The position numbers were made by a program, and so were the translations under genes. DNA of 64,000 nt from Dimorphilus gyrociliatus (lineage: Eukaryota; Animalia; Annelida), in assembly GCA_904063045.1 (NCBI GenBank), contig CAJFCJ010000001.1, positions 2,728,001-2,792,000 of the forward strand. Reading direction: 5' to 3'. Under the pieces are notes generated by a model that ran no database searches, had not been told where the DNA came from, and saw only the letters and a program-made list of their open reading frames with translations. The number at the start of each line of letters is the position of its first letter. The first letter of the stretch is position 1. Below, in pieces: positions 50,340 through 62,430 of this stretch.

Positions 50340-53053
<2,714 letters not shown>

Positions 53054-53805
53054 TGCAAGTATATTAACTTTAAGAAATAATTACAAAATTGAATATTTAA
53101 CGAATTTTCTCATTAGACATTCTTAGTAATAGTTCCATTAAAAAATATCCAAAGATTTATTGGGAAAACGAAAATAAAATTCACGCTGAAAGTAGAAAGA
53201 ACGATAATTGGTTGACCGAATGAAAATCGAAATCGATATTTGAAAAGAATCATATCGTATCGCGTACTATCGATTTGGACTTTTATTCGAAAACTTTCCA
53301 CAAAAACAAACTTTTACCTTATAAAGTCCTAAGTTTAACACTATCGATTCAAAAGTCCAATGCATAGTTAATAATCAAAACAAAATATGTATTTCTTAAA
53401 ATAACGTTACGTTTATCAATGTCTCTTTTCTTGTTAGTTAAAAAAAAAATAAATATCAAATATTATGTTGATAAAACAATACAGTAGTTTTGTGGTAAAA
53501 AGTAACTTTACTTTACCATCTGATTAATTAAAATTAAGTTTGATTGTCGCTTAAATTACCTCTCTTCTTACAAAAGAAAAATCAGTTGATTTGTTGAATA
53601 GACTTTGCCATTTGTTTCAACACTTGCAGATCTCTATAATTATTAATAAATTAATATTATTCTTCTACAACTGAAATTATTTTCTCTTAGTATTTGATTT
53701 GTTATTGGTAAAGCGGCTATTTTAATATATCTCTAAATACGTGTCTCTATAAATATTATGATTAAGTCTATAGAATTTATTCATCTAGTGAAGCGGTCGA
53801 AAAAT

Positions 53806-55534
53806 TTACAATGGCAACTCAAATTTTACATCGACTGCTGCTTCTTTAGCCAATGCGACAATATCGGATAAACGTACAACCTGTTTAAAATAAAGAGTTA
53901 ATTAGTAATTTAAGATATAAGTCTTTTATAAGATTTTTAAAAGAGAAAAAAATACATCGCAAAATGATTTATTACCATTTTAGCGGCGTCATCCAAATTA
54001 TCACAAGACAAGATTCGAAGGCCAGAAGCGGCTATGAGAGCTTTGGCATCTTCTACTCTGGTACCCTGAAGTCGAACAACTACGGGTATATTCAGATTTA
54101 AGGTTTGAGCAGCATCAATAATTCCCTTAGCAATTACGTCACATCTCATTATTCCTCCAAAGATATTCACTAAAATTGCCTTCACTCTAGTTTTATCACT
54201 GGTTATTAGTCTGAAAGCTTCGGTAACCTGCTCGGCCGTAGCTCCACCTCCCAGATCCAGGAAATTTGCAGGAGAGCCTCCATGCAATTTGATAATATCC
54301 ATGGTGGACATTGCTAAACCAGCACCATTAACTAGACAACCAACGCTTCCATCCAGACCAATGTAATTTAAACCAGCTTTGCTGGCAACTTCTTCACGTG
54401 GATCTTCTTGTGACCAATCGCGAAGTTTATGAATTTCTTTCTGCCGATATGCTGCATTGTCATCAAAGTTTATTTTACAGTCCATACAGTAGACTTTTCC
54501 AGTGGCATCCTCAGCCATAGGATTGATTTCAATTAGAGTAGCATCGTAATTGATAAATACGTTATACAGCTTTTCGATATAATCTGCAGCTTGGACAGCT
54601 TGGTTGCCAGTAAATCCCATGGCTTCAGCCACCCTTTCGGCTTGCTCCTTCTTTATTCCTGTATTAATATCTACAGGTTCTGTGACAATACTTTCTGGAC
54701 TTTCTTTCGCAACTTCCTCGATATCCATTCCTCCTTGAGAACTTGCTAGCAGCACAGGGCCCTGCAAGGAAAGAAAATATGTAATAGTTATATAAAAATA
54801 AAAGAATGATGATTACAGCATGTTTTCTGTCCATGGTAATAGCAAAGTAGTATTCTCTTCTCGAATAGAGTCTTTCGCACACCATAACTTTGTTGACAAT
54901 ACGACCAAGCTCCCCAGTTTGTTTCGTAAATATTTTATGGCCAATCATTTTGGATGCTACCTCCTCTGCCTCTTTTTCGCTAATTTCAATAAATATGATA
55001 ATTTTAATTAATAAAATTTCTTATAACAAACTAATGAATTGTTTACTTGAAAACTATTTTCACTCCTCCTTTTAAACCGCTGTCAAAGCTACCTTTTCCT
55101 CTTCCACCAGCCAAAACTTGAGCCTTAAGTACAACATCCTTAGTCCCAGTTATTTCACCTTTGGAATTAGAAAATAATATTTGAACAGAAATTGTACAAC
55201 GTTTGGGACGAACCATATTTTTTAGCAATTTTATTCACTTCGTTGGCACTTTCAGCAACTTTGTATTTGGGAACAGAAATGCCATTTTCCATAAGCAGAT
55301 TCATGGCAGAATATTCGTGAATATTCAAATTTCTTCGCTGATTGACAGTCTGGTTTTTCACACTGACGGCCTGTCATAAAAAGCGGAAAGACAGCGTTAT
55401 CATGCATTTTTTCTAACAAAATGATTTAATACATTTTGTTGAAATTATTAAGATTGTCATACTTTCAGTAAGTTTCCAATTGCACATTTTTCATGAGACA
55501 TAAAATTTCTCGCCCGTGTTATTATGGACGCCAT
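53806..55534 (-). CDS. SUCLA2: Succinyl-CoA ligase [ADP-forming] beta subunit, mitochondrial
   Basis: [53 protein letters not shown] and [11 protein letters not shown]-terminus [24 protein letters not shown] fits the ADP-forming paralogue. Confidence 0.93.
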
Positions 55535-56485
55535 CTTTATTTTCGACCTTGTCGTATGGTTGGGCAAATTGTGGACTTAAAGTGGCAAAAAGCTATATAC
55601 ATCTTTATATACTAAATTTGATTATTTTTTATCTACAAATGGGAAAGTCTACTTTTTTCTGATAATTTGATAAATTCGAAAAATTCAATGAATCTTTGCT
55701 CTGTTCTTTCCGGTCAGAGTTTTTAGCGGGAAAATTATAAAAATATATTTTATTTTTATTTCTTATCTCTAATCCTTAATAATAATGATAAATATTCATA
55801 ACAAACCTTACAAGAGATTAGACTTTGATAGATTTCGTAGTAAAAAACTGGCATACAAAGGTCATGAGTAACAATTTCTCTACCTTGGTTTATTGTTTTC
55901 TTACATAAGCACGAAAGAAATACTAGAAATTAAGTAATACAAGGCGTTTAGTGACTAATTCCTAATTGCATTACATTTAACGAAAAAATCAACTATAGTA
56001 TAACTACCTTTAAGATATGTGATGTGAAGATACAGAGTACATAGTACACATTTCTAAATATAATTAAATTTACATTTATTTTAAAACAATAACATTACAC
56101 GAGACAATAAGATAGTTAATAAGTGATATTTATAAGAAGTATATAGATACATTATGCCATGATTATGTGATATTTATTTCTTATAAGTTTAAAATAACCA
56201 ATTTGAATTAAAAGTAAATAGGAATATTTTATATTCTTAATCTTGTTAAAATAGTTCAACTTTAAAAATTGCTATAATGTAATGTATAATATACAATATA
56301 TAGTTTAGAAAGATATAAATAAATATATATGCTGTATATATGTATATATATATATAAGACAATGTGTAAATGGAAATAAATTGAGCAGGAAAAGACATGT
56401 TTAAGAAATATACGAGTATCTGCTCATTATCAGTCTTTTTCTCTTTCTTTCTCTTTCTTGCTTGCTATTCCTCTTTTTGTTTTCT

Positions 56486-57605
56486 TTAAGAACGCTTTAG
56501 AAGTACGGAGAAAATACTTGCTGTGGCAATTACTGCAGCCGAAAATGTCAACCATTGAGGTGGGTTTGTAGACTCATCCTGGGAGAACTCTTGTAGAAAT
56601 TCCTTCCAGCCTCCCTTTTTCTCAAAATATTCTCCAACTTTTTTATATAAATAATAACCAGTAAAATCTCCTATGGCTTCCACAGTTTTATCAACATTAT
56701 GCTGCAATCTACAAAATAATGAATTTTCGAATATTATTATTATAAATATTAATAATTTTAATTTAATTTAGTTACCCAAACTCAATGCATTTTTTAGCTA
56801 TCCATCCACTAAAGGCGAAGACAACAACAAGACGCAAGCGATGATTATCTTCCAAATCATCTGAAAATGTTTCATCTATTATCTTCATAATCCAATCAAG
56901 TCCTTTTTTCTCTGCCAGCTTAAGTCTAGTGACGAGTTCTTCAAATTCATCCGAATGACTCTTAATTATATCTTTGACTAATTTTCTTGTTGTTTTTATA
57001 ACAGGGTTAAGAGGAGTATAACTATCATCATCTCTCAAGTCCTTTGTTACATATTGAGCAATATCTATACCCAGTAAGCGAAAACTGGACAAATTTTTTG
57101 ATTGAACACCATAAGGTAGGCAAGAATTTTGGAGGTTAACCCCATCAGGTAAATCCTCTCTAGTAAATTGCCTGACAACCTCTGGAGCATCCATTTTATT
57201 GTCTTTATCAGATTTTAAGTCTTCTACGTATTTTAATAACAATTCAAGTTTATCGCTCATTTTTTCAATCTCATCTTTATGTTCGAAAGGATTATTTTCT
57301 TTCAAAACTTCATCTTCATTAAAGACTTCACTAAGTTTTTCAATTAAATGGCCGTTATTACTATTTTCAAGTGCCTTATAAAATATCTTTTTAATATTTT
57401 CGTTCCTACTGTTATTAACAAACTTTAAAAGTTTTCTTACTGCAGGTATTGGTCCCTCATGGTTGATAGTCAGATAAATTCGATCTTTTTGCTCATGAGT
57501 TAAAATATATTCTTGGAATAGATGATCCGTCAACGATGCGGGCTCTATATTGTTCACCAAATATGTATAATTTTTCCGAAGTATTAGTGTGAAATTCATA
57601 TTCAT
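56486..57605 (-). CDS. CARD-Bcl-2 family fusion protein (350 aa) with C-terminal membrane anchor
   Basis: Exons 57605-56776 and 56708-56486 (phase 2, GG|A). Residues about 3-91 show a CARD pattern. The C-terminal half has BH3-like RKLVKDIIKSH, BH1-like FSDDLEDNHRLRLVVVFAFSG, BH2 KKGGWKEF and a TM tail WLTFSAAVIATASIFSVLLKRS. Confidence 0.82.
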
Positions 57606-57966
57606 TTCTCAAAATCTCAATAGTGGTCAGACTGCACAAAGAGACTAGAGAAATTGTTGTCTGCAAATCCTAGTCCCGCACTCGTATTTATACATATTTG
57701 TTATTGTCTTGTAAGAAAAACCACTTAGCTAATCTATGATTAATTTACACGTGATGAAGAAATATTATATAGTTCACTTACGGCTACAGCTAATAAGATT
57801 TTGAAGTAAGATTTATTTTCTTCCCTTTTTCATAGATAAAAAAATATTTGCAAACACGAAGAAAAAGTTAAAAAGAAGCTCAATTAAGATATTCATAAAT
57901 AGGTTTATAAATGCTTATCTCCTCTGCCAAAGCATTATGGCAATTTATCAGATACACATTATACTG

Positions 57967-59838
57967 TTAATCTTTAGCATCAGCTATCCCACCTCCTGTA
58001 ATAGCGAAAGTAGCCTCGTTCTCAGGGAGATCAGGGCTTGTAAAAAATAATTTATTTTTAGTTTTTCGATGAATAATATAAATATTTTTATTACCTATCA
58101 TATATTTTGGCAATACGAGTTTCCCCACGACCTTTTCTTAAACTTATTCGTGTAGTAGAAGCATGAGCTAAAACATGTCCACCTATTGGCTTTTTCGGAT
58201 CAACCTGAAATCTATAATTCAAAAATAAAAATTTAAAGGTAATGTCATAATGTAAATTTACGTCATAGTTGCTCCAGGGTCGGATGTCATTTGATTTGTT
58301 ATCAAAACTGACAAATTGTATTCTATTTGAAAAATGTATATGTAATTATTATTAAGAAATAATTATACCACTACAACCTTCAGAAATTTTCTGTAATCTT
58401 GATAATAGCTGTGCTAACTTTTGTTGACGATCAGCAAGTTCACCTCTTCCACTAAAGTCAACTCTAAAAAGAGCCATAACTGAATCCATTATCTGGAAAA
58501 ATAAAAAAAAAAGTTTCAAATTGTTTAAGTGTCGTATTGTATAGTTTACGAGAAGTTTGAAAACTCCCATTTCTTCGTGAAGTTTAGCTGCAGCATAATC
58601 CAATAAATCCATTTGATGTTCGCCTAGAAATTACTCGTATATTTTGTTAATCCTCTTAGTAGTCTACACTTTACAAACTTGTATATGCTCTTGCATATAA
58701 AATATTATCCAAAACGGCCTCTGAATCCAAATTGAATCTCTCAGCAATTTGTCTTAGGCGTTCAGGTCGGCTAAAAATATGTATTGGAAGATAGATTTTG
58801 AAATATTATTTGTAAGTGAAAACCTACAAAGTTCCTTCGGTGTCTATATAGACAACTTTACCTCCTGGATAGTCACTTCGTGGTATTTGGGATGTAACTA
58901 ATACATAATAAATTTTAATGACAGTTGACTTCATAATTGCGAAATACCACAAAGAGTATGTGCCAATTGGGTTTTTCCCGTCCGAAACTCTCCGAATACT
59001 TCCGTTATAGCCATACTCTCAACTCCACCACCAATTACTTTGCTGAAGATAAAAGTTATAGTTGATTAAATGATAGCTTAAATATAACTTTTTTCAACTT
59101 CAACGCAACATACTCTAATTCATCACTGCCTGAACAAATTCTAAAGCAATTCTTTCGGACATCTGCGTATTCTAAAGCAGTTGTAAATCCCCCATGCTGA
59201 AATTAGTTTGCTTTTTATTACATACTTCTAGGCTAAATACATATAGTCTCAATATAAAACTTTAAATAAACTATATAAAATATAGTAAAGAATAAACCAA
59301 ATATCTCTATTCTATCTAGTAGATTAAATGTTTCGAAGGTAATGGAAATATCATGTACTGTACTTTCAGCGAGAATATCGTCTTGAAATTGAACAAAATC
59401 TAACGTACCCCTAGCAATTTATTTGCCACCTCTTTAATTTTTTCAACTTTATTTTCGCTAAGGCCTTTAATAGCACACATTCTTTTACGAGTTGTCATTT
59501 GTATACCCTATATATATAATAGGAATAATTTCGTGTTTATAAATTATTAAAACATTTTCCTTTTACCTTTACGGTACATATACCAGCTGCTTTTAACTTT
59601 TTTATATCAGCAGCATTCTAAAAATCATTTTTATAAAATTTATAAAGAATTAATTCTGGAGATAATTATATACAATGCCATGTTCTTGCATTTGGTCGAC
59701 ATCAATAAATAATTCAGTTTCATTATCGAATAGTTCGTTTTGTGTTCCCATATCAGAAGCTTTTGTGCAAGTACTATCAATGTCCTTAACTTTACTCCTT
59801 TGAGTGGACCTTTGAGACATTTTAGCTTGTTCTTGCAT
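57967..59838 (-). CDS. DMC1: Meiotic recombinase DMC1 (about 10 exons)
   Basis: [93 protein letters not shown] and [22 protein letters not shown] and GHVLAH favour DMC1 over RAD51. Confidence 0.95.
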
Positions 59839-60194
59839 GACTTTAATAATATGAAAATAAAGTATTTATTCCAATTGAATTAGAATGTGCTCTGGTGATT
59901 ACTATTTAAATTTTGCAAACGCTATAAAGTTAAGAAAGTAGAAAATATAAAGTTCAAAAGTTTTTTATACACTACCTTCAAGTATTACCAATTATTTACT
60001 ATAAAGTGTTTTCAAAAAGAAATGTAACACAAAGCTTGAAATAAATTCACCCAATGTTCTGAAGAGAAGAATTCGAGCTGTTCGAGAAGAACTCAATGTT
60101 GTTTTCGTATCAAAAAAATACGAAATACACCGGAAGCTCACTAAAGCGTGCGTTTTGTTTTCGCTCAGTGAAGTAGTCTACGGAGAGCATTAAA

Positions 60195-60727
60195 ATGGTA
60201 TGTATCAGTTGAAAATATTAAATAGATCTAAATATCATGGTACAAAGATTATTGAACAAGCATAGAATATATCACGTTATAAATATTTGACTAATATTGT
60301 GTTCTATCATTATTTTTCGACTAATAGATTGCGGTATTCTTTTCAGACTGAAGAAGTAAACCCTAAAGCTTACCCTTTAGCTGATGCTAAACTTACTCAG
60401 ACCATTCTACAGTTGCTGCAACAAGCTCAGCACTATCAACAATTGAAGAAAGGGGCAAACGAAGCAACCAAGACTTTAAACAGAGGTATTGCCTCGTTTA
60501 TTGTTTTGGCTGCAGACGCAGAGCCTTTGGAAATTCTTCTACATTTACCTATCTTGTGTGAAGATAAGAATGTACCCTATGTGTTCGTCAGAAGTAAAAC
60601 GGCATTGGGACGAGCATGTGGTGTCTCTAGAGCGGTAATCGCAGCTTCAGTAACGAATAACGATGGATCACAACTGAAGTCGCAAATTATTCAGGTTCAG
60701 CAGAGTATCGAGAAACTGCTTATTTAA
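60195..60727 (+). CDS. SNU13: SNU13 / NHP2L1 (15.5K kink-turn-binding protein)
   Basis: ATG-only exon 60195-60197, then 60347-60727: [13 protein letters not shown]...[16 protein letters not shown]...[38 protein letters not shown]. Confidence 0.96.
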
Positions 60728-61047
60728 ATGTTTATTACGATCGTGGAGTTTTTTAGTGTTTAAATAAATTCAAAGTTATCGGAAAAAATTTTAATAAAAG
60801 ATAAATATTAATAAAAAATAACAGCTAAACTTATAATTACCAAATACAGTACATTAAAGAGTATATTTAGGTGAGATGTGCATTTATAAAAGATCATGTG
60901 AACTGTTTCAAAACGTATTTACTATCGGTGTAATTCACTATCAGTCGGAAGCGGAAGTTCTTCTATTCGTTGGAATTAATAATATCGAGTTTCTATAAAA
61001 CGACGACTGATCGATTTTAACATTATTCAGATTAATTTGGCTTAGAA

Positions 61048-62430
61048 ATGGTAAGATCTATCTTTTAGTGCAATTCAGTAGTCATTTACAATATTTGTCT
61101 ATTAATTTTATTTTCCAGGGTGAGCGTAAGGGCCAAAATAAATATTATCCACCAGATTTTGACCCAGCAAAACATAAATCTCTGGATAATTATCATGGAA
61201 CACACGCTCTACGAGAAAGAGCACGAAAACTGCATCAAGGAATTATTATTATCAGGTATGATTTCATCGAAAACTTGTAAAGAATTAGCTAAATTTAATT
61301 AAAAATTTAAGATTTGAAATGCCTTACAATATTTGGTGTGATGGCTGTAAGAATCATATAGCTATGGGTGTCCGATATAATGCCGAGAAATCAAAGATTG
61401 GGAAATACTATACAACACCAATATATAAATTTCGAATGAAATGTCATCTTTGTGACAATCATTTTGAAATTAAAACAGATCCAGCTGTAAGTGGAATTTT
61501 TCTTAGTAGTTGTTTCATTATACTTATTTAATTTGCCAGAAACATGATTATGTGATAACAAGTGGTGCCAGACGAGAAGAACAGCGCTGGGATCCGTTTG
61601 AAAATGAACAAATAGTGCCAGAAGGTAATCAGAATAAAGAAAAGTAAAAATCTTTAATTATTAAATATTTTTAGATAAGGCAACGCATAAGAAACTTGAA
61701 ACTGATGCTATGTTCAAATTAGAACATGTTTTTGATGATAAAACAAAAAAGATTGAAGCTGCACCAGGGTTCAGTGAAATTGTAGATAAAAGGAGTGAAT
61801 GGAAAGACGATTATTCCTTGAATAAAATGGCACGAAATATTTTTAGGGTAATCATTTCTTGTCAAAAATAATTAATTTTTAAATAGCTAATTTTTTGCTA
61901 AATTAGACAGAAAAAAAGAAAATTAATGATAATAATAAAGCAGACGATAATGTAAGGAATAGACTGTGTCTAGATATTAATTTAATGCCAGAAAATGAAG
62001 AAGATGTAAAATTAGCCGGTTTAATTCAATATGAACAAACTGATAGTAAGTTATTAGAATAAGAATATATTTTATATGTTCATTGCTTATTAATCATCAT
62101 TAATTATTTTTTGAAGATGAGGATAACTCTCAATTAAAAAGAAAGCACGAAGTAATTAATCAATCTATTTTCTCAAAAAAGTCTGGTTCTAAATCAAAAA
62201 CTTTTCCATCTTTAAAATTATCCTCAAACCCCGTTCAAAAAGATACATCGTTAAAATTGTCGTCACCTTTAGTAAGAAAGAAACAAAAAATGGAGACTGA
62301 TAATGTACCTACAGAATCTAAAACAATTGATGATAGTGGTGGTGATAAAGATGAAATTAAAGTTGAAAAAACTTCTGGCATTTTATCACTATGCAAATAT
62401 GACAGTTCAGGATCATCTGAAGATGAATAA
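61048..62430 (+). CDS. YJU2B: CCDC130 / YJU2B splicing factor (Cwc16 family)
   Basis: ATG-only exon 61048-61050, then GERKGQNKYYPPDF, ALRERARKL, FEMPYNIWCDGCKNHIAMGVRYNAEK, FRMKCHLC and LETDAMFKLEH. Stop at 62428-62430. Confidence 0.92.

Follow-up and report, generated by a model that had tools for sequence, protein, structure and literature searches.

Textbook Bcl-2 proteins are known to reach caspases only by way of cytochrome c and Apaf-1 or by binding CED-4, and they carry, to our knowledge, no death-fold domain. In Caenorhabditis elegans, the membrane-bound Bcl-2 protein CED-9 holds the CARD-bearing death-pathway protein CED-4 at an organelle; CED-9 has no CARD of its own and binds CED-4, an Apaf-1-type ATPase, through another surface. 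MAVS combines an N-terminal CARD with a proline-rich disordered stalk bearing TRAF sites and a C-terminal tail anchor, the small CARD protein CARD19 (BinCARD) is anchored through its C-terminus in the membrane of mitochondria or endoplasmic reticulum (ER), and in the CARD9/CARMA proteins the CARD is followed directly by a coiled coil; none of these is known to have a Bcl-2 domain. Here we describe a gene in a 64,000-nucleotide stretch of the annelid Dimorphilus gyrociliatus (contig CAJFCJ010000001.1, positions 2,728,001 to 2,792,000; hereafter the window), in which a CARD, a helical linker, a Bcl-2 domain and a tail anchor form a single chain. On balance, this expressed and conserved gene probably encodes a tail-anchored protein of the pro-survival (Bcl-xL/Bcl-2) type whose N-terminal CARD docks a CARD partner at a membrane.

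The gene lies on the minus strand and comprises two coding exons that together specify 350 residues (Table 1), the only open model among all GT-AG pairs in an exhaustive splice search. An uninterrupted open reading frame begins at the ATG (57605) and extends to 56772, where its terminal codons run into the GT donor; an in-frame TGA stands two codons 5' of the ATG, and the start codon of two close orthologues falls at the position of Met3 of the window protein. The stretch is contained in one public sequencing run only, X1, in which 91% of sampled words are present. This run is not recorded as RNA; its contigs are taken to be RNA-derived because they skip 14 short GT..AG introns on the minus strand within 5 kb, and they are informative on splicing and not on transcript ends, strand or level. 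A 3,274-nucleotide contig of X1 joins 56776 to 56708 exactly as predicted and is continuous from 56776 to 58036, with the whole CARD exon included. The sequence-only reading had proposed a single 350-residue frame of CARD, linker, Bcl-2 domain and tail anchor, with CARD and BH1 in one exon and hence no gene-model artefact, and this is borne out by the splice model, by Pfam and by the spliced contig. The idea of a pseudogene, or of two adjacent genes read as a single frame, can be regarded as already refuted: although neither exon alone reaches the Pfam Bcl-2 cut-off of 31.4 bits, one unbroken frame holds both CARD and BH1, the splice is present in RNA-derived contigs, an identical gene model occurs in two further species, and the same architecture recurs in approximately 21 sequence clusters. 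Two large, length-limited protein searches returned no annotated protein identical to the gene product; the gene may have been deposited as a different model, such as one fused to the adjacent DMC1 gene, that lies beyond the length range searched.

The CARD half is recognized by profile and by fold, as the sequence-only reading had anticipated. Over residues 8-92 of exon 1, Pfam assigns CARD_2 (PF16739) at 46 bits (cut-off 28.2) and CARD (PF00619) at 40 bits (cut-off 23.9). An AlphaFold2 model of the exon-1 protein contains a six-helix CARD, with block values of the predicted local distance difference test (pLDDT) of 88-97 over residues 11-100 and helices at 5-11/13-19 (a broken first helix), 22-31, 37-49, 52-65, 71-81 and 86-91. 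Comparison with Foldseek placed this model against the single-CARD targets of RIG-I, Apaf-1 and MAVS with target template modelling (TM) scores of 0.73-0.84 and root mean square deviations of 1.2-2.4 Å, and MDA5, NLRC4 and ASC are also among the CARD matches. The E-values of these matches are weak because the exon-1 model holds two domains; the top fifty matches shown are all CARD or Bcl-2 proteins, with the exception of one designed protein. C-terminal to the CARD, a linker helix is predicted at low confidence for residues 111-135, followed by a disordered stretch. Weak coiled-coil matches were obtained with Pfam in two relatives, and the succession of CARD and helix is shared with the CARD9/CARMA group. 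The short linker motif at residues 137-154 is mostly invariant among the three orthologues and aligns with a conserved short helix of the wider family described below. The linker also carries the motif P-F-E-H-K-D (57273-57290), of which P, F and E are invariant in the three orthologues; the form P-F-E-x-x-[D/Q], present in two of them, conforms to the consensus for TRAF6 binding, PxExx(acidic/aromatic), but the motif is not kept in the wider family and may be a chance occurrence.

The Bcl-2 half is divided by the intron, and Pfam scored the two exons separately. Exon 1 matches Bcl-2 (PF00452) at 28.4 bits over residues 207-275 (profile positions 2-68) and exon 2 alone at 13.8 bits (positions 68-100), a rough sum of 42 bits for a whole-domain cut-off of 31.4. 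The two pieces abut in profile positions, and consequently the intron cleanly splits one domain. When the spliced window protein was compared with a profile of 21 other CARD-Bcl-2 proteins, built without the window's own clade, it scored 160 bits (CARD 54.5, Bcl-2 108.9); the Bcl-2 alignment spans the splice junction, and none of 300 shuffles exceeded 7 bits. The earlier assignment of a Bcl-2 domain therefore stands as homology through the family profile, whereas neither exon by itself attains the Pfam cut-off. In Foldseek, the exon-1 model, which is without the last three Bcl-2 helices, matches NRZ, Bcl-2, Bcl-xL, CED-9, Mcl-1 and Bak at target TM scores of 0.38-0.51, and exon 2 alone had no significant match among solved structures in a single-sequence search.

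The window protein retains the G-G-W of BH2, the groove tyrosine, the arginine of the N-W-G-R signature and the tail. The alteration of N-W-G-R in BH1 that had been noticed at the outset is confirmed by translation and alignment: the window protein reads N-H-R-L-R and the two orthologues N-C-R-L-R, so that only the arginine (R258) is kept, a residue invariant in all 24 aligned sequences. A second proposed alteration, from G-D to K-D in BH3, did not hold, as alignment to Bcl-xL through a relative instead gives V-K at the G-D positions, followed by D. Valine at the BH3 glycine position is typical of the whole family and no peculiarity of the window gene. No other 19-residue segment of the protein is as hydrophobic as the tail (mean Kyte-Doolittle value 1.94), and a tail anchor is likewise a feature of the orthologues and of full-length relatives. 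In Bcl-2 proteins, a tail flanked by basic residues directs the chain to the outer mitochondrial membrane or the ER.

Fusions of this kind also occur beyond this genome. A HMMER profile of three exon-1 proteins, searched against 1.84 billion representatives, matched 67 proteins, approximately 21 of which (clusters at 50% identity) are 340-430 residues long with the CARD and Bcl-2 stretches both matched (family set P0003-P0026, P0040, P0060 and P0077-P0079). All ten of the relatives tested match both a CARD family and Bcl-2 in Pfam, Bcl-2 at 62-87 bits and, in nine of them, generic CARD at 35-69 bits; in the tenth, P0004, the sole CARD match is CARD_2 at 28.0 bits, for a cut-off of 28.2. The alignment reveals a common plan of CARD, long helix, short conserved helix, variable spacer, Bcl-2 domain with a BH4-type helix, and tail, and the fusion is kept across sequences with mutual identity of only 20-40%. 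One member is present in GenBank under the name LSAT2_027704, a hypothetical protein from the annelid Lamellibrachia satsuma. P0008, its close relative, aligns with Bcl-xL at E 3e-20 over the span from BH4 helix through BH2. In the model of P0008, a CARD (9-95) precedes a helix of 57 residues (113-169), after which come the Bcl-2 bundle, with block pLDDT of 68-95, and a terminal helix; the bundle superposes on Bcl-xL and Bcl-2 with target TM scores of 0.80-0.85 at 29-32% identity. Judged from these comparisons, CARD, long helix, Bcl-2 domain and transmembrane segment define a so far unnamed family in annelid-type sequences.

In gene structure as well, the wider family resembles canonical Bcl-2 genes, in which an intron stands right after G-G-W. 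Most members are genomic open reading frames that end just past G-G-W, with CARD through BH2 in one exon. In four relatives (L007, L010, L011 and L012), the tryptophan codon of G-G-W is directly followed by a GT donor (GTAAGT, GTAATG or GTCAGT), and a downstream exon for an acidic stretch and tail anchor was found at three of the four loci checked. The Bcl-2 half of the family thus shares with Bcl-xL and Bcl-2 the alignment from BH4 helix to BH2, canonical N-W-G-R and G-G-W, the intron after G-G-W and a basic-flanked tail anchor, and differs from them by some 170-230 additional N-terminal residues of CARD and helical linker.

The sequence-only reading had allowed that similar fusions might already be catalogued in other invertebrates. 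As to occurrence this was well founded, the architecture being widespread over the approximately 21 clusters, whereas no published description was found. Full-text searches of the open-access literature yielded no description of a Bcl-2 protein with a CARD, domain-architecture databases lying outside that search. No mention of a CARD-Bcl-2 fusion was found in recent surveys of apoptosis genes in metazoans and lophotrochozoans (PMC10959488; 10.1101/2023.12.11.571055), in an Acropora repertoire paper or in a 2007 paper on the ancestral network. In a protein atlas, a fold search returned Bcl-2-only and CARD-only clusters and none with both, which is not evidence of absence because only clusters of at least 50 members were covered; feature searches of the atlas gave no usable match.

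Within this family, the window's lineage is a derived one. In a maximum-likelihood tree, the three orthologues form a clade nested in the family on a stem of 2.2 substitutions per site, with P0003/P0004 as nearest canonical relatives (support 83/86). Four changes fall on that stem: replacement of W and G in N-W-G-R; shortening of the linker by 40-60 residues, with a helix of approximately 25 residues; loss of the intron after G-G-W, which is absent in the window and both orthologues; and a new phase-2 intron 32 codons upstream of the lost one. The intron loss and gain (or sliding) inside a conserved domain is a clear case, and the tree identifies the window's lineage as a fast-evolving derivative of the family. 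It is by these same traits, an altered N-W-G-R, a shorter linker and a displaced intron, that the window gene differs from LSAT2_027704 and the approximately 21 clusters, with which it otherwise shares CARD, helix, conserved short helix, Bcl-2 domain and tail. The replacement of the N-W-G-R tryptophan and glycine and the upstream intron also set the lineage apart from Bcl-xL and Bcl-2, to whose solved members the window protein has no significant single-sequence similarity.

As the rest of the family is canonical, the altered N-W-G-R can be placed in the window's lineage only, and its possible effect can be considered from what is known of this position. The BH1 glycine (G145 of Bcl-2, G138 of Bcl-xL) is required for Bax binding, which is abolished by its mutation, and it packs against a small residue of the incoming BH3 helix. 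Given this role, a leucine or arginine at that position should close or retarget the groove, and in the window's lineage it is probably either inaccessible to standard BH3 helices or retargeted. Even so, no part of the protein is better conserved than the Bcl-2 half, a fact that argues for a retained role and not for decay.

The two close orthologues allow constraint to be compared along the chain. They were the only relatives returned by a word-based search, are approximately 54-56% identical to the window protein, and derive from genomic open reading frames of other sequencing projects; both have an intron at the same phase-2 position (65 and 54 nucleotides) and a second exon with BH2 and tail. 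Identity among the three is 39-60% for the CARD, 55-60% for the linker, 66-82% for the Bcl-2 half and 57-80% for the tail. The nonsynonymous divergence (dN) is 0.12-0.26 and the synonymous divergence (dS) is saturated at 1.3 or above; low dN beside saturated dS indicates that all parts are under purifying selection, the Bcl-2 half most strongly. Exact dN/dS ratios were set aside, dS being saturated. The lower identity of the CARD could suggest that the protein is an ordinary pro-survival Bcl-2 paralogue, in which the CARD is a relic without a separate partner or serves only self-association or stability. We consider this improbable, as the CARD itself is under constraint (dN 0.25 for a dS of approximately 1.5), is modelled with block pLDDT 88-97 over residues 11-100, lies above the Pfam cut-off in the window protein and in nine of ten relatives, with the tenth just below, and has been retained with the Bcl-2 half across sequences only 20-40% identical.

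The matches of the CARD invite the question of its partner. With the family CARD profile, MDA5 CARD2 and RAIDD are found best (E approximately 1e-13), then CED-3, caspase-9 and Apaf-1 (E 1e-9 to 1e-10), and the CARD11 CARDs weakly (E approximately 1e-5). CARD subtype as a pointer to the partner was rejected, since MDA5, RAIDD, CED-3, caspase-9 and Apaf-1 fall within approximately 12 bits (41.5-53.1).

It could be speculated, in line with the innate immune signalling proposed in the sequence-only reading, that the protein acts as a MAVS-like innate immune adaptor, its membrane-bound CARD taking a signal from CARD sensors (RIG-I-like helicases or others) and seeding filaments, with the Bcl-2 fold in place of the stalk. 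The window CARD scores better with CARD_2, the RIG-I/MDA5-type model, than with generic CARD (46 versus 40 bits), whereas most family members score 44-69 bits with generic CARD and 22-33 bits, or no match, with CARD_2. By sequence and by fold its best solved-structure matches are the CARDs of RIG-I and MDA5, with that of MAVS also among the best, although RAIDD ties with MDA5. In topology, with an N-terminal CARD recognized by CARD_2, a spacer and a tail anchor at the C-terminus, the protein matches MAVS, yet the proline-rich stalk with its TRAF sites is lacking and a folded Bcl-2 domain, absent from MAVS, stands in its place; this strongly conserved domain would have no role in the MAVS scheme. 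The one TRAF6-site-like motif of the linker, found in two of three orthologues, would agree with such a role but, given its absence from the wider family, could be chance, and a search for RIG-I-like receptors in the genome returned nothing. We think a MAVS-like function quite unlikely, although it is a real rival for the window's subclade, in which the highest CARD score comes from the RIG-I/MDA5-type model.

The docking of a CARD partner by a pro-survival-type protein, which we favor, can be outlined as follows. The tail with its basic end would insert the protein in the mitochondrial outer membrane or the ER, leaving the remainder cytosolic, and the CARD would dock a CARD partner at that membrane through a homotypic CARD-CARD contact. 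Candidates for this partner are caspase-2-type or caspase-Y-type initiator caspases, CRADD-like adaptors and CARD-only proteins; caspase-2, caspase-Y and CRADD are reported to be present in annelids and Apaf-1 absent (PMC10959488; 10.1101/2023.12.11.571055). Apaf-1, which the sequence-only reading had named as a possible partner beside CARD caspases, was accordingly removed from the list (PMC10959488). The linker helix would probably pair or bundle chains. One chain might in this way do the job of CED-9 together with the CARD protein CED-4, a likeness that we infer at the level of function only: the Bcl-2 chain carries its own CARD, in animals reported to be without Apaf-1 (PMC10959488). In canonical members the groove, with N-W-G-R and G-G-W, should still take BH3 ligands, and what is held by the CARD could then be under ligand control. 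The window's lineage may use its strongly conserved Bcl-2 half mainly as a membrane scaffold.

Whether such a protein would hold its partner inactive or switch it on is a related consideration. It is conceivable that the family forms an activating platform standing in for Apaf-1, on which clustered chains bring CARD caspases together on the membrane and switch them on, the clustering arising through the linker helix or upon engagement of the Bcl-2 half by BH3 ligands or by proteins of the Bax/Bak type. The 57-residue helix between the CARD and Bcl-2 parts in the family would suit this role, but the linker helix is cut to approximately 25 residues in the window's lineage, where the groove is also altered. 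The CARD profile matches the CARDs of caspase-9, Apaf-1 and CED-3 (E approximately 1e-9 to 1e-10), yet no NTPase or other known ring-forming module accompanies it, and Pfam gave no NB-ARC match, the mark of the Apaf-1/CED-4 architecture, in the window protein or the ten relatives. The Bcl-2 half moreover resembles pro-survival Bcl-xL and Bcl-2, including the BH4-type helix, and the named members of the family are all annelid, so that any link with Apaf-1 loss would be tentative. Activation of this kind therefore appears unlikely, and, the Bcl-2 half being of the pro-survival type, we rate sequestration of the partner slightly above its activation.

Several observations weigh against the docking of a CARD partner by a pro-survival-type protein. 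The CARD, on which docking would depend, shows the lowest conservation of any segment when the three close orthologues are compared, and its subtype, as far as sequence comparison goes, gives no clue to the partner, there being no clear winner. The window's Bcl-2 half alone has no significant match among solved structures (best Mcl-1, E 0.22), and the structure prediction covers exon 1 alone, with block pLDDT of 54-86 in the Bcl-2 part. The start of the mRNA is not visible from the contigs, and the RNA-type contig extends into DMC1. Finally, for every member of the family, location, partner and direction of effect are those that we infer.

When these results are placed into physiological context, annelids, molluscs and brachiopods are of particular relevance, as they are reported to lack Apaf-1 and yet to keep Bax/Bak-type proteins and CARD caspases (PMC10959488; 10.1101/2023.12.11.571055). 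For the route by which Bcl-2 control reaches caspases in these animals, a Bcl-xL-like family with its own CARD offers a concrete, testable candidate. It is possible, if doubtful, that in annelids, and perhaps in other spiralians reported to have lost Apaf-1, this family supplies the link that is missing between Bcl-2 control and CARD caspases, and that the window's lineage has been uncoupled from BH3 ligands. Were this true, a single membrane-bound chain would do the work of CED-9/CED-4 or of the apoptosome and would hold or fire initiator caspases directly at an organelle surface. The window gene adds a natural variant, with its BH3 groove signature broken and the domain under strong constraint, and comparing it with canonical members could tell roles that depend on the groove from those that do not. 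Should the protein merely be a decorated pro-survival Bcl-2, the family would be a modest addition to the shuffling of death domains in invertebrates.

Table 1. Coordinates of the CARD-Bcl-2 gene, its elements and adjoining features in the window
Feature	Position	Strand	Description
Coding exon 1	57605..56776	-	residues 1-276 and first two bases of codon 277; CARD, linker, Bcl-2 helices through BH1
Intron	56775..56709	-	67 nt, GT..AG, phase 2, between BH1 (alpha5) and alpha6
Coding exon 2	56708..56486	-	residues 277-350 (to 56489), stop 56488-56486; alpha6, BH2, tail anchor
CARD	57330..57584	-	residues 8-92; Pfam, AlphaFold2 model, Foldseek
Linker helix	57204..57272	-	residues 112-134; coiled-coil candidate; shortened counterpart of the family's long helix
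Short linker motif	57144..57197	-	residues 137-154, K-M-D-A-P-E-V-V-R-Q-F-T...
Bcl-2 domain	56585..57092	-	residues 172-318, intron-interrupted; Pfam pieces and family profile
BH4-like helix	57036-57083	-	motif coordinates checked by translation
BH3-like helix	56955-56999	-	motif coordinates checked by translation
BH1 (N-H-R-L-R...)	56805-56846	-	motif coordinates checked by translation
BH2 (G-G-W-K-E-F)	56585-56614	-	residues 309-314; BH2 signature, G-G-W then an amphipathic helix, present
Tail anchor	56498..56554	-	residues 329-347, then K-R-S and stop
TATAAA	57692-57687	-	candidate promoter element, 82-87 nt 5' of the ATG of the CARD-Bcl-2 gene; from sequence
AATAAA	57817-57812	-	likely poly(A) signal of DMC1, within the spacer
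Last coding exon and stop of upstream DMC1	57968..58036	-	RNA-type contig joints and sequence
SNU13/L7Ae	60287-60727	+	neighbor gene
YJU2/Saf4	61068-61531	+	neighbor gene

The surroundings of the gene are conserved together with it. From 53000 to 61531, the window holds genes for a succinyl-CoA ligase beta-like protein, CARD-Bcl-2, DMC1, SNU13/L7Ae and YJU2/Saf4, and the same order is found in both related species, where the orthologues (L001 and L005) sit between Rad51/DMC1 and succinyl-CoA ligase genes with L7Ae and Yju2 beyond. The position of the gene directly downstream of DMC1, as originally described, was upheld, and the neighbor is DMC1 and not RAD51 on the evidence of one exon, the penultimate (67 versus 58 bits). 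Germline co-expression had been put forward for testing on account of this adjacency; its conservation in three species shows microsynteny in compact genomes, not co-expression. The distant family members L011 and L012 do not adjoin a Rad51-type gene.

The 3,274-nucleotide contig continues from the CARD exon through a 361-nucleotide spacer into all DMC1 exons. Overlapping untranslated regions, read-through and k-mer or assembly merging would all give such a contig and fit equally; operons are reported not to occur in D. gyrociliatus (PMC7854359). The G+C content of the window is 31%. Downstream of the gene, a separate set of RNA-derived contigs covers exons of the succinyl-CoA ligase gene (54800-55300), where short GT-AG introns measure 55 and 67 nucleotides. 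The 3' flank at 56305-56469 contains a purine-rich (GA/AAAG) tract and TA-rich simple repeats, and the minus strand has its next AATAAA at 56178-56173.

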